NCBI GenBank assembly: GCA_002104945.1
Contig: MCFH01000029.1
Coordinates: 310,001-374,000, forward strand
Direction: 5' to 3'
Length of the DNA: 64,000 nucleotides
Source of the DNA: Piromyces finnis finn
Taxonomy: Eukaryota > Fungi > Neocallimastigomycota
The notes beneath the pieces are model-generated. The model was not told the origin of the DNA and made no database searches. It worked only from the letters and a program-made list of their open reading frames with translations. Position numbers and translations under genes: made by a program. Of the stretch, positions 1,391 to 62,243 are shown one piece after another. Within the stretch, counting starts at the first letter, position 1; each line of letters opens with the position of its first letter.

Positions 1391-1998
1391 TTTTGAGAAA
1401 GTTGTTTTTTAATTATAAAAAGAATCATAAATAATAAAAATAGCTTTGTTATTTCATTATTATTTTTTATATAATTAATTTGCTTATTTTACTATTAAAA
1501 TATATTAATATATTTAAGTATTCAAACCAAATAAAAAAATACTAATTATTAAGGGTTAGAATAAATATATATACAGTTTTTTTTATAAATATTAATAATA
1601 ATAAATTTATTAATAATAAATTTGATGCATAACTTTTGAATGATTATTTAATAAATATATCCTTATATTTTTTTTTATAAAATTTTTTTAATATTATAAT
1701 ATTTAGAAATATCTTTTTAAATAAATTATAATTATAATTAAAATAAATAAATAAATACTTTAAGTGATAAGAATAATTTCTAAAATAAATTTCATTCATA
1801 AATTTTTATTAGAAATAAATTTTACATATTAAAATTAATGATTAATTATTCAAAAATTAATGATTGCAATTCCATTCAATATATATAAAATATATCTAAA
1901 GTTAAATTATTCATTACATTTACATTTAATTTAATTTATAAAACATACTTTTTTTTTTATTGAGAGAATAAATTCAGGAGAATTTTTTAAATTAAATT

Positions 1999-3526
1999 AT
2001 GCAGGCGGGAGGTTCTATTAGGTAAAATAATATAAAATAATATGTAAAAACATTTTATCTTTTATATTATATTCAAACCTTTTTTTTTTTTTTTATACTG
2101 AAAAATATGTTAAAATTAATTTTATATTATTTAATTACTTATATATGTTATCATAATTAATATAAAATTATCCAGAGAGTATATTGATGCAAGGAAAAAA
2201 GGAGGAATAACATGGTAAATTCAATTTAATATTAAATAACAATAGTTAAAATCATTAACATACAAAAATAATATTATAAAAATAAAATAAAATTCATGAT
2301 ACATAATAAATCATTATCATTATCATTATTAATATAATTATTATTAATATAATAATTTTGAAGTATTTATATTAATCTTTAAAATTATTATTTGCTTTGT
2401 TATTAAATAAAATATTCGAACAAATAAATTGACAAGTATTTACTATTTTTAATTTTATCTATATTTATATATAAAATTTTTTTATTAAAAAAATGTTATT
2501 AATATTTTTAAAAGGGATGAATTACGTGCAATTAAAGCAAAAAAAGATGATTCTTCTTTTAATGAAAACCAAATGTTAAAGTACAGAGAGCAACTAGATG
2601 AAGAAAGAGATAGACGTTTGAAAGGATATGGTATAGATGGTGAAAAGAAAAAGAAAAAAGATAATAAAAGAAAAAGAAGTAGTAAAGATAAAAAAAAAGA
2701 TAAAAGAAAAAAAAGATCTAGACATAGTAGACATAGAAGACATAGTAGTAGAAGACATGATAGTAGCAGTGATAGTGACAACAGTTATAGTTCAAGTGAT
2801 AGTTCAAGTGAAAGTTCAAGTGATAGTAATAGTGATAGCGATGAAAGATCTCATAAGTACTATAGAGGAAATAATAATAAAAATAGTTACGATCGTGAAC
2901 ATAATCATAAAAATAAAATGGATATTATTTCACAAAAGAATGAACAAGGTAAAGAGGAAAATAGAAATTCACCATTAGATTCTATACGGCAAGAAAATAA
3001 GATTAATAATGAACAAGATTCTAATATGAAAGTAGATAGTAAAAATGCCATAAGTTTAATGGAAGAAGTAGAAGATGGTGAAATTATATCAAAATCAAAG
3101 GAATCTTTATCTAAAGATATCCAAAAGTCAGAGCACAATTCAAAAAAAAAACATCATAGAAGTAGACAAACAAAAACTAAATATGATACAAGTTCTGACT
3201 CTGACTCTGATTCATCTTATGATTCTGATACAGAATCATCATATGATTATAGTAGATCAAAAAAGAAAAAGAATTATGTAATTATTATCTATTATTATTA
3301 TTAATTAATACAAATATTTTAAATATTATATATTATAACGAAATTCTAAATTATTCTTAATTTTAAATATTTCAAATTTTAGAAAAAACGTAGTCATTCA
3401 ATAGAAAAAAGAAGACATCATCATCATCACCATCATAATAATAATAATAAAAATTCATCTTCAAAAAAAGATAAAGATGAAATGGCTCCACCTGTGCAAC
3501 TTTCTAAATATTTAGGAAGGCATTAA
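1999..3526 (+). CDS. FAM133-like Lys/Ser/Arg-rich nuclear protein, 4 exons (1999-2021, 2176-2214, 2515-3277, 3383-3526)
   Basis: All junctions keep frame: MQAGGSIREYIDARKKGGITWDELR...MLKYREQLDEERDRRLK, then K/R/S-rich low complexity and C-terminal PPVQLSKYL. This resembles the FAM133 N-terminus as I remember it. Confidence 0.6.
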
Positions 3527-3590
3527 TAGTTTTTTAATTAATTTCAATTTTATTATAAAATTTATTTCAAATTTTAGATTTTAAAAATTG

Positions 3591-3624
<34 letters not shown>

Positions 3625-4162
3625 ACATTACAAAATATTTATTAATAATCAATAAAAAATTAAAATCATTTATATATATATATATAATAAAAGATATATT
3701 GCAGAAAATAATGTCAATAAGTAAAAATAAGTTTATTTTTTGTATGAATATTTGATATCAATAATTTTAAAATAAAAACTAAATTGTCATTAAATCTTGA
3801 AATTTAGCAAATATTTTAATAATCAAGTTATTAAATATAAAAATTTGCAATTTAATTCGATATTATTGCCATTTCTATGTAATTATATATTAAAACTTTT
3901 AAACGAAAAATTTATTTTATTTTATTTTACTTTATTTATTATTATTTTTTATTACTTAATTTTGTTATTTTATTTTGCTATTTCCCATAATTGATAATTG
4001 TTTGAATTATTGTTGATTTTTATGTACTTTATTTTTATATATATATTATGATAATTATTTATTAAAGTGATGAATGATTTTTTTATTTATACATTATTAT
4101 TAATATGTATTTGTTTTTTTTTAAAAAAAAATTTTTTTGTAAAATATTTAGTTGTTATATAT

Positions 4163-49326: not shown

Positions 49327-52300
49327 TTAAAATTCATCTTTTTTCTTTAATAACTCGGTTAATTCTTTTTGATTTGGACAATGATCTTCTAACATCATAT
49401 ATGGCCATGATATAATAGGTGTATTTTCATTTTGAAGTAATTTTGGTTTTTCTTCTTGAATAGTTGGTGCAGCTATTGGTACAGAAGACATAAGTCTAGC
49501 TCTTATTTGTTCTATAGTTTCTGGAACTGGTGTTGGTATAAATATTTGGTCAATTTGAGGTTTAACAATCATAATTCCTTTATTGTAATATGTATCTTGT
49601 AATTCTCTAGCTTCTTCTACTTTATTAAATTGTAATAATGCTTGACATAAAGATTTTACACTTTCATGAATATCATCTAATCTTTGAATAGTTTTTCTTA
49701 AAGAATTAATTAAATAACCTTCTTCATATATACTTCCCTTTTTACCTTTCATCATCTTACGTTGGAGCTTGCGACGTTTTCTTCCTCCTTTACCAGTATT
49801 AATACTAGCTGTAGCTGCTGTCATTAGAGAATTTGCTAATGTATAAGCAGTAAATCCTGTAAATTTACTTGCCATTGACATAGTATCCGGTAATATATCA
49901 ATATTATTGTTATTTGTAGAACCATCTAATGTACGTTCATCCATTTTAAAGATTTCTCCGGATTCTAATTTTTTTTGCTTTTCGATTCTAATTTCAATAA
50001 GACGAGAAGCTTGTTTTGTATAGAGTTCCATATATTCTTTTATTGTTGTAATTAAACGAGATTGTCCAGATATAAGCATAGAGATTACTTGTGTTTCTAA
50101 TTCAGACTGAAGATTGTGCTTAAAATAAAGTCTTACAGCTTCAAGCCATTTGCCTGATTTTAAGAAGTAATTAACAGCTTCTTTTGGTTTATTTAAATAT
50201 TCAATATAGATATAAGCTGCATCCTCATATAATTTTTCTTCTTGAAATTGTTCAATTAAATTATTGGCAATTTCGTTTAGCTTTTCTTTATCATAATTCT
50301 GAGATGTAGCAATTGTAAATATTTCTCTCCATTTACCCGTTTTTTGATAATACTCGATAGCTTTGTCATATTCTTTTGCCATCCAAAAAGCCAAACCAGC
50401 TTGATTAAATAATTCATTAGATGCCAAATATTCAGCATATATTGAAAGAACATTTAAATATTTCTTTTCGTCACTTTTGAAAATTTTCATAGCTTCATTA
50501 TAAAGGAAATGTTTTTTAATATAGTTTAAACAATCATTAAAGTATTTTTCTCCAGACATACTTAAACATTCTAGTGCTTTTTCATACTTTTCCAAATAAT
50601 CATTTATTTTGAAATGTTGATAATTAACTTCCAATTTTTGTAAATTTTGAAGGAATGGAATATATTCACGAGGATCTTTTTGAGATTGTTGAGCAATCAT
50701 TAAAACCAATTCAAAATCATATAAACTTAATGCAATATTATATAATTTATCTACATTAACTAAGAATATAATATATTTAATAGCTTTTTCAGCTAATTCC
50801 GGCTTATTATCATTTTTAATAGACTTAATACAATACAAGGCTTCTTCAAGTTGAGGAGGTTCACTCTTAACATATGAAGTTAAAATTGGTTGAACATATT
50901 TTATTTTGTCAATAGATTCGAATGTTTTTCTAATAGCTTTACAAATTTTATTTACTTTATTTTCAGATACTTTTTGATTTGTAACTAATGACAATAAATT
51001 ATTGTCTACTGTATTACTTATGCTAACGACATTTTGTAAATTAATTCCTAATGGATTTATTGGTTTTGTATTTGTTGAATAGTCCTTCATTTTATACATA
51101 CCTTGTGTAATATCCTCATTCTTTAAACCAGAAATAAATAAATTAAAGTAATCTTGATTATCAATTTGTTTAACAAACATTTCAATATTTTCAATAAATT
51201 TTTCTAAGTTGTGATCACAAAGAATATTCATATCAATACGGTGTTTCCTACACATAATTAATGCATCTTTATAATTATATTTGTCAAGTAGATTACGAAC
51301 TTTCATTAATACCAATGCACGTGGGCATACTGTTTCGAGATTTCCTCTTGGCATCTGTAATACAAGTGAAATGTTTGACTTTACTGCAGCAACAATTTTT
51401 GATCCACGTTCCACGCGTCTTATTGACTCATCAAATATATTTGATATATTGCTTCTATCGTCAGTAATTTTGAAATTTTCGAACGGTATATTCAATGGAA
51501 GAAAGCGAGCTGTATGTGTCATTGTAGTGAATATTAAATAATCTGAATGAATATAAAATGATGTACAATTTGATACTATTAAATTTTCATTAGCATATAA
51601 TCTATTTCTTGCTGTTAATCCAATAACACATTTTGTCTTTTGTTCATTCTTTCCAATGTAAGTTACAGCCAACCATGGACAGATGTCATTTAATTGTAAA
51701 CACTCTTCAAATGGTTTATATGCTATATTAAAATCACTATCAATTTCAATTGAATATAATGAAGCGTCTGTACTTTCAATTAACATATCCTTTGTAGAAG
51801 AATTACAAATTAATCTTACAATTTTGTTATTATCATCATCAAACTTCTTTTCAGAAGTTTTAATAATTTTAATATCATCTTCAATTTGCTCAATTTTAAT
51901 GCATAGAAGTTTTTCTACATTATTATCTACATTTAAGTCATGAGCTATAGCAATTAATGTATCTTCATTAATCCAAGTTAATTGGCGATAATGAATATTT
52001 TCTCCAGGAAGTCTTTTTATTTTTTACATTATATAAGAATAAACTTAGAATAATTAAAATTATAAAAAATAATTTAAGTTTTACAAAAATTTTGTTAATT
52101 TTTTTTAAAGTTACCTTAATTTACCAATTATTGATGGTCCTGCTATTGGTTTACTTTCAATATTTGATTTAAAGAATTGAACTGTATTATCAGAAAGTAA
52201 TACACAGAAATCATCACCAATATTAAATGGAGCAAATGATATATAAGAAGCATTTCCTTCAAGATCAGTTTTAAATGACGCCATTGGTGGTGGGACATTT

Positions 52301-54866: not shown

Positions 54867-58589
<3,723 letters not shown>

Positions 58590-59917: not shown

Positions 59918-62243
59918 TCATACAGCATAATTAACTTTTCTTCTTTTCCTTAATGAATATCCGGTACTTGTTTCGCTTCGTAAAATCATATTTTTTATTA
60001 ATTTATTATTGTTTCCTTTAGTTTTATTTTTATTTAAGAGATAAGATTTTTCTGTTTCTTTCTCATCAAGTATTTCAATTATTTCTCTTTTTGTTTCTTT
60101 ATTTTTGCTTTGGCTTTGAATATTGTCATTATATAATGCTTTATTATCATTTAACATTATAATTTTACCATTAGATAATTTATTGTTGGTTTTTTTATTA
60201 TCATCATATTTTTGTTTGCAAGTTAAAGCTTCATTATTTTCATTGATATTTTTATTTTTTGTTAACATCATTTTTCCATTACTTTCTATGCTGTTATTCT
60301 TATTTTTTTTGTCTTCTAAAATATTATTTTTATTATTATTAGTTATTTCTTTAATATTGTTTAAAACCTTTTTATTATCTTTTTTCTTTTTATTGTTGTT
60401 AATATTTCCACAGTAAATTGCTTTCCCCCATTTTGAAAATTTGTAATTTGGATCTATTATTAATCCTTCTGGAATTATAACTTGTCTATAATAATTAGCA
60501 CATTGATATCCTACCTATATTTCCATATACAATATATTTAATCGCTCGATATTTACAAAGTGATTATATAACGAGAATAAAAATAAAAGAATATATTAAA
60601 TAATAATTTTCTTTACCCTTTAATATTTATTAATTATTAAATTAAAAAAAAAAATTAATAAAAAAGCGTAATATTCATCATATTATTTACTATTTATTTT
60701 AATTTTCTATATAAGAAAAGAATGTACATTACCTTCTAGGAATATATGATGAAAAAATACCCCATTTATCACCACATCCATATTTTTTTGCTATTTTCAA
60801 AAAAATATCTTTTTCATTTTCATCCCAATCACCGAAATTCTCTTTATTACAGATACATTAATTATATATTATTTGCTTAATTACATAATATACTATTTTA
60901 TTTTTTCAGAATTTTATTAAATAATTATTTTTTTTAGTATTTACGTGTTAATCCTGGTTCAAGATGTCTATAGAAATAAGCATTAGGATTTTTTTGGAAT
61001 AATTTTGAAGCAACAAACTTAAGTATAATAAATTTATATATTATTAATTCAAAATATTTTTTAATTAATAATAATATTTAAAACAACCAAATCGTACTTT
61101 TGCCGAAGACCAATTTTTTGGTTTTACAGTCTTTACTTTTTCTTTATATTCTAATTATAAATCAAAATATTAAATATTAATTTAAAAAACTATATTAATA
61201 ATATTTATTAAATAGATTTTTTTTTACCTCCTAATGGATTATTTCTTGAATATTTTCCTCCTCCATTATTTTCCCATGCCTTTTAATATTAAGAACAATT
61301 AATTTAACTATTATTATTATTATTATTATTATTATTCCGTATATATATAAATTTTTATATAATAATACTTCTTTTGCAGATTTCTCGAAATGATACTTTT
61401 CAATTAAAGCTGGATTAATCCATCCTTGTTGTTAATTGAAATTTCAATGATTTTTTAATTTATATAATTAATATAAATGTAAATTGAAATTATTTTTATT
61501 TACTTATTTATTATTATTTTTGATATACCTTTAAAATGTCCATCAACTATAATTGCTTTTTTTCTTATTTCTTCAGTTAAATATTCATCTGCAGACAATA
61601 ATTGGTTATCCTTTGAAAGTCAACAATGATTATTTAATTTAAAATATTTTGTAATAATTCTAAATAATTTTATATCTGTTTTTACATACATTTTCTGAAT
61701 CTGTTTCATTTTCCTAAATTTTGTATTAAGTGCAATAATTAAAAAAAAAATAAAATAAATTTTATTATTCTTTTTAATTTATATTATACCTCATTTTCTT
61801 CAATCTTGTTTTCAACATTTGTTTGTAATTTTTTTGCTTGATTACGAGTAATTCTTTTAAATGCTGGCTTAACTTCAGCTATGTTTCTTTTTTTGTAAGT
61901 CTTTCTTTAGTTTAGTAAAAATAATTAAAATGAATAAAAAATATATTTTATTTTATTTTATTTGTAATTTATTGGAAATTAATTAATCTACTTTTTTTTT
62001 ATTTTTTCCTTTTCGGTTAAATCTTTAAATAATAGACTTGCACTTAGTAAATTTAATTCCTTTAATTTCTCTTGGTTTTTTCTAATATTTTCCAGTCTCT
62101 TTCTTTCATACTCATTAACATTTTCTTTATCTAATTAGTATAAAATTCATTGTTAATCGAATTATAAATTTTAAAATTATACTAGTAATTATTAAAATTA
62201 TTGTTTTCTTTAAGAACAATATTATTATTTATATCCTACCCAT
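59918..62243 (-). CDS. Myb/SANT-like domain protein of unknown function, multi-exon
   Basis: N-terminal EYERKRLENIRKNQEKLKELNL; NPNAYFYRHLEPG; FGDWDENEKDIFLKIAKKYGCGDKWGIFSSYIPRRVGYQCANYY (Myb-like W..W..Y spacing). The model requires a 1-nt exon at 60617. Confidence 0.75.

Follow-up and report, generated by a model that had tools for sequence, protein, structure and literature searches.

A single nucleotide in the Myb/SANT-like gene BCR36DRAFT_413408 of the gut fungus Piromyces finnis, G60617, is with a probability of about 0.88 a constitutive one-nucleotide exon that lies between two short U2-type GT-AG introns, is older than the divergence of Piromyces, Anaeromyces and Neocallimastix, and is joined to its neighbors by sequential splicing. 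The window, which is the whole stretch of 64,000 nucleotides that was analyzed and to which all positions refer unless another contig is named, has a G+C content of ~18% and belongs to a P. finnis assembly of 56.46 Mb in 232 contigs. The anatomy of the junction is conserved in the genomes of three genera, and the mRNA of Neocallimastix carries an A at the position in question. That P. finnis itself uses G60617 is very probable, judging from homology, from the public protein and from the cDNA of relatives. The features of the gene on which the argument turns are as follows.

59918-62243, minus strand: entire coding region, 12 exons with 434 codons in frame, of the Myb/SANT-like gene; its product equals the public protein P0007.
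60733-60841, minus strand: exon 10, in phase 2 at its end; it encodes (Q)NFGDWDENEKDIFLKIAKKYGCGDKWGIFSSYIPR and supplies AG, the opening two bases of the Arg codon that follows.
60618-60732, minus strand: intron 10, 115 nt, GTAATG...TTAAAG, canonical GT-AG and near the size of the other introns of the gene.
60617-60617, minus strand: one-nucleotide exon, reading G (plus-strand C), third base of the Arg codon AGG in IPR-R-VGYQC.
60515-60616, minus strand: intron 11, 102 nt, GTAAAG...ATATAG.
59918-60514, minus strand: exon 12, the last exon, starting in phase 0; it encodes VGYQCANYYRQVII, which forms the Myb domain's third helix, then a tail rich in Asn and Lys, and contains the stop codon.

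The product of the 12-exon model is letter-for-letter the public protein, 434 aa in length, and translation of the joined exons showed that all of the other junctions are in frame. Furthermore, the exon borders of the model coincide with the break points of matches to the cDNA contigs of relatives, and the nine other introns of the gene, which range from 76 to 109 nt, all have GTA as their first three bases and TAG or AAG as their last three. The Pfam family Myb_DNA-binding (PF00249) matches P0007 at residues 203-248 with 28.6 bits, the gathering threshold being 24.4; the junction lies inside this match, and exon 10 holds the first half of the Myb domain so defined. Repeats R1 and R2 of c-Myb align without gaps across the junction of exons 10 and 12, and the core of the protein is 80-92% identical among gut fungi. 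Exon 12 alone, when used as a word-search query, recovered one distant homologue only, and the full-length proteins fall beyond the length window of that search. At the other end of the gene the first coding exon (62240-62243, minus strand) is also very short, consisting of just ATG and a G (4 nt of coding sequence) before a 109-nt intron, and the resulting MD-KENV... agrees with P0007.

On the minus strand, the final letters of exon 10, up to 60733, are ...ATT CCT AGA AG, with the donor GTAATG starting at 60732, while the last exon begins at 60514 with GTA GGA TAT CAA TGT and is preceded by ATATAG. Joining exon 10 straight to exon 12 gives AGA AGG TAG, and thus a stop, and the presence of IPRRVGYQC in the public P. 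finnis protein implies one added base at the junction. The gap between the two exons (60732-60515) measures 218 nt, and since the nine other introns are so much shorter, it is approximately twice the normal size. Within this gap an AG (60619-60618), the G at 60617 and a GT (60616-60615) adjoin one another as AAAG-G-GTAAAG, and a split at G60617 yields introns of 115 and 102 nt. Retention of intron 11 would not serve as a substitute, as it reads RVKKIII and then a stop, that is, a stop after 7 codons. The exon ends, the phases, the AGG TAG stop, the AG-G-GT and the 115/102-nt split had all been claimed in the preliminary description, together with the stop in a retained intron 11 and the intact frame at every other junction; each of these statements about the sequence holds on re-reading, and the last is borne out by the identity of the 434-codon model with P0007.

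Other ways of bridging the gap were enumerated. Among AG...GT micro-exons with a length of 1 mod 3, the P. finnis gap offers six candidates, five of which contain stops, and the only open one is the single G. Alternatives with one intron were rejected: exon 10 has no in-phase GT, an in-frame TAG (60517-60515) directly abuts exon 12 so that no upstream acceptor can lengthen that exon, and a donor at 60727 reads through TAA. Introns of the U12 type were likewise rejected, as the donors are GTAATG and GTAAAG and not RTATCCTT.

Orthologues with genomic sequence were found in two other genera of gut fungi, and their junctions are given below, with a slash at each splice boundary of the flanking exons and hyphens around the lone base.

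Anaeromyces robustus, contig L002: CCT AAA AG/GTATCA; AAAAG-G-GTAATT (G at L002:3495); AACAG/GTA GGA; introns of 168 and 79 nt.
Neocallimastix 'constans', contig L004: CCT AAT AG/GTAAAA; AATAG-A-GTAAAT (A at L004:3387); ATTAG/GTA GGA; introns of 140 and 85 nt.

Both genomes show the same mismatch of phase 2 and phase 0, direct joining leads to AGG TAG in both, and each gap contains exactly one AG-N-GT. The mid-gap motif that the preliminary description proposed to look for in orthologues is therefore present once in each, and neither species has the single uninterrupted in-phase intron that would have spoken against the proposal. Enumeration of the N. constans gap left the one-nucleotide exon as the sole open micro-exon; in the A. 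robustus gap exons of 19 and 31 nt are also open, but the residues that they would add are absent from every homologue. No conserved intron sequence was found among the three gaps, and alignment with MAFFT did not even place the AG-N-GT motifs in register; because the gaps cannot be aligned between genera and the motif is kept in each of them, AG-N-GT has outlasted the complete divergence of the sequence around it. In dinucleotide-preserving shuffles of each gap, an AG-R-GT with both halves of at least 60 nt arose by chance in 3.7% of shuffles for P. finnis, 0.7% for A. robustus and 1.3% for N. constans. A scan of metagenomes for further genomic orthologues yielded none, the contigs recovered there being of the cDNA type only.

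The base that is kept in mature mRNA was read from cDNA. In the JGI metatranscriptome contig L006, which encodes protein P0003, the junction reads CCT AAT AGA GTA GGA. This cDNA is 97-100% identical to the exons of N. constans contig L004, with the reservation that it comes from a metatranscriptome and is not provably from the strain of the genome. Bases 504-620 of L006 correspond to L004:3130-3246 and bases 622-798 to L004:3473-3649, and the sole base outside these flanking exon matches is base 621, an A, which equals L004:3387. Since the extra base in the Neocallimastix cDNA is A, and the boundaries of the gap could supply only G, a slipped boundary is excluded there, and only the A in the middle of the gap fits. 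A second cDNA, L007, also reads AGA at the junction, and AGG is found in cDNAs L003 and L005, the former from a Piromyces-like species that matches the window's short conserved exons at 84-91% identity. As AGG and AGA both encode Arg, the lone base varies synonymously among these cDNAs. Finally, four sequencing runs from three studies, whose type was guessed as RNA, contained 0.39-0.45 of the words sampled from window:59850-62300; by the exon lengths, a transcript freed of all introns would contain 0.456, and one that retained the 218-nt gap ~0.55.

The reading that competes most directly with a one-nucleotide exon is a single intron of 217 nt with non-canonical, shifted ends, either TA...AG (60731-60515) or GT...TA (60732-60516), in which the mid-gap AG-G-GT would be a coincidence. 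Such an intron would produce an identical mRNA in P. finnis and in A. robustus, and both cDNA L003 and protein P0007 fit it as well as they fit the exon; because every gap of the form GT...AG both begins and ends with G, the mRNA of these two species, whose lone base is G, cannot by itself separate the two readings. Neocallimastix does separate them, however, as its extra base A, seen both in the gap and in cDNA L006, is obtainable from neither boundary, and this answers the concern of the preliminary description that a cDNA with an added G would be equally compatible with a shifted intron. A shifted intron would also leave the retention of AG-N-GT in three genera, within introns that are otherwise unalignable, as well as a gap of double the usual intron length, to chance, and it would be non-canonical in a gene whose every other intron is GT-AG; we consider it improbable.

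Two further explanations would place the fault in the assembly or in the gene, and both appear very improbable. A one-base assembly error, with a G missing at an exon edge of a true gene that has one ordinary in-phase intron, is suggested by the GG and GGG runs at the junctions, which are typical places for indel errors, and a single DNA run contains the stretch, probably the one from which the assembly was made. However, A. robustus and N. constans, which were assembled independently, show the same phase mismatch, and the base that would have to be missing in N. constans is A and not G; with three independent assemblies sharing the mismatch, an error of this kind was taken to be ruled out. 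Similarly, the reading frame of P. finnis ends at the TAG unless a base is added, as would be expected of a frameshifted gene or pseudogene, or of a gene in which the base is supplied post-transcriptionally by editing or is compensated by ribosomal frameshifting. Such an origin is hardly credible given the strong conservation of the protein among gut fungi, the expression of intact cDNAs in relatives, the presence in the four putative RNA runs of the word share expected of spliced mRNA, and the availability of a canonical splicing solution in all three genomes.

Homologues that lack the introns provide a measure of how many codons belong at the junction. The Arg codon is uninterrupted in P0001/L001 (IPGRVGYQC, GGC CGT GTC), in Basidiobolus contig L008 (CAT CGA GTC) and in Bifiguratus contig L009 (CAC CGC GTA), and all three, which fit the pattern IP-x-R-VGYQC, have one codon at the junction and no more. 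A paralogue on a different contig of P. finnis, L017 (G000:C189:72412-75636, minus strand), reads IPGRVGYQ and has no intron at the Arg codon, its intron lying after GYQ instead. As the outgroups and the paralogue are without both introns, the intron pair represents either a gain on the line leading to the gut fungi or a loss elsewhere. The C-terminal stretch of the paralogue resembles a U-box (PITLEEVVKPAISPYGHV), and the Atlas lists a related cluster with Myb plus U-box.

Under the one-nucleotide exon reading, removal of 60732-60618 and of 60616-60515 would give CCT AGA AG-G-GTA GGA, which would restore the Arg-Val of the third helix and with it the single Myb/SANT domain; the mature P. finnis mRNA is predicted to read CCTAGAAG-G-GTAGGATAT. 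Skipping of G60617 would lead to an immediate stop. Because the 3' and 5' splice sites are 1 nt apart, the complexes that recognize them should not fit together, and we infer that one intron leaves before the other does. This would be akin to recursive splicing with the difference that one base is kept, and either order of removal appears feasible: the exon-side bases of the inner donor would read AAG-G before and after intron 10 leaves, and the bases past the inner acceptor would read G-GTA before and after intron 11 leaves. Since AGG and AGA both encode Arg, the lone base would be free to be either G or A. A strict YTRAY is absent from the last 45 nt of intron 11 in P. finnis and from the upstream intron in A. 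robustus, and in DNA this rich in A and T the motif is uninformative. The ends of exon 10 and intron 10 were observed to co-vary among the three species (GAAG/AAAG in P. finnis, TAAAAG/TAAAAG in A. robustus and AATAG/AATAG in N. constans); this likeness could perhaps preserve the surroundings of the donor during stepwise splicing or could be due to chance, and with acceptors so rich in A and T it counts as weak evidence.

Arrangements in which two splicing reactions share one place are known in other forms. Ratchet points, as in Drosophila Ubx, are zero-length exons in very long introns at which a 5' splice site is regenerated directly downstream of a 3' splice site. In fungal stwintrons, an inner intron interrupts the splice signal of an outer one, so that consecutive splicing reactions are needed. 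The Myb gene resembles ratchet points in its adjoining 3' and 5' splice sites and in the presumed stepwise removal, but it keeps one nucleotide and both of its introns are ~100 nt; a zero-length ratchet point was rejected because one base stays between AG and GT. Like stwintrons, the Myb gene has two introns in one place and would require consecutive reactions, but a base is left between them, and a stwintron was rejected because intron 10 and intron 11 both possess an intact GT and an intact AG. Recursive splicing at ratchet points has been reviewed (PMC5126111).

One-nucleotide exons as such have been described before. The preliminary description was right in calling them rare and in giving APC11 of Arabidopsis thaliana as an example, but its view of APC11 as the sole known case does not stand, as cases from Fusarium and Coprinopsis have been published. 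In A. thaliana APC11, the one-nucleotide exon A333 was proven with GFP reporter constructs (Guo & Liu 2015, PMC4674806). The Myb exon is similar to it in being a constitutive one-nucleotide exon between two canonical GT-AG introns, which keeps the frame and has been mis-annotated in public records; unlike the reporter-proven case in a plant and in another gene family, it is supported by comparison of genomes and by the cDNA of a relative, and its base is G or A depending on the genus. In Fusarium CYP621A, a one-nucleotide exon in AGGGT, within an intron of double length, is backed by SRA reads (Nelson & Syed 2026, PMC12940212). The two cases have in common the AG-G-GT, an intron region of ~2x the usual size, an intronless relative that serves as a length marker, and the location of the base in a conserved motif. 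However, CYP621A belongs to the Ascomycota, where the exon is found in one genus, is always G and is the middle base of a Gly codon, whereas the Myb/SANT gene belongs to the Neocallimastigomycota, where the exon spans three genera, is G or A and occupies position three of an Arg codon. A long-read annotation of Coprinopsis cinerea contains 13 one-nucleotide exons in 13 genes, and leaving them out leads to premature stops (PMC12230235). This work is alike in reporting one-nucleotide exons from a fungus, and differs in being a catalogue from the Basidiomycota without comparative analysis of each gene. A search of the literature found no paper on micro-exons in the Neocallimastigomycota. The class is thus already known, and the Myb gene adds to it a case with conservation across genera and a natural G/A test.

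Exons of one nucleotide mark the physical limit of what a spliceosome can define, and a handful have been documented; here, one is conserved over three genera of an early-diverging fungal phylum. Because the natural difference between G and A distinguishes a true one-nucleotide exon from a slipped splice site, it acts like a built-in mutagenesis test. More tentatively, and with odds somewhat below even, such exons may be recurrent and lineage-wide in the Neocallimastigomycota, where they could have arisen from the gain of a second intron at an AG/G/GT proto-splice site one base off, and have been kept as the intron-definition splicing of short introns tolerates stepwise removal.

Automatic gene models are broken by exons of this kind, and both annotation pipelines and spliced aligners must accommodate them. 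The public N. constans model P0025 (contig L004, gene 1501-3982) reads IPNR-QVII by way of a cryptic AG inside the last exon; as a result, the model lacks the Myb recognition helix (VGYQCANYYR) and has no Pfam match.

Several other features were observed in the course of the analysis. The 2.7-kb cDNA-type contig L005 (JGI contig Ga0138317_1010388) carries two coding stretches, 2-1006 and 1037-2464, on the same strand and 30 nt apart: a scramblase open reading frame and the Myb orthologue. This synteny is absent from the P. finnis window, from L002 and from L004, and L005 is probably either chimeric or a tandem arrangement peculiar to one species. Elsewhere in the window (55139-55937, minus strand), a long simple-repeat tract, which translates as FIYL/FYFIL in all frames, lies within an apparent coding region with a nucleotidyltransferase-like stretch; the tract is probably an intronic or intergenic microsatellite. 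Finally, an open frame of 819 aa (49327-51786, minus strand) encodes a product which, by eye from its translation, we take to resemble the C-terminal part of the Elongator subunit ELP1/IKI3.
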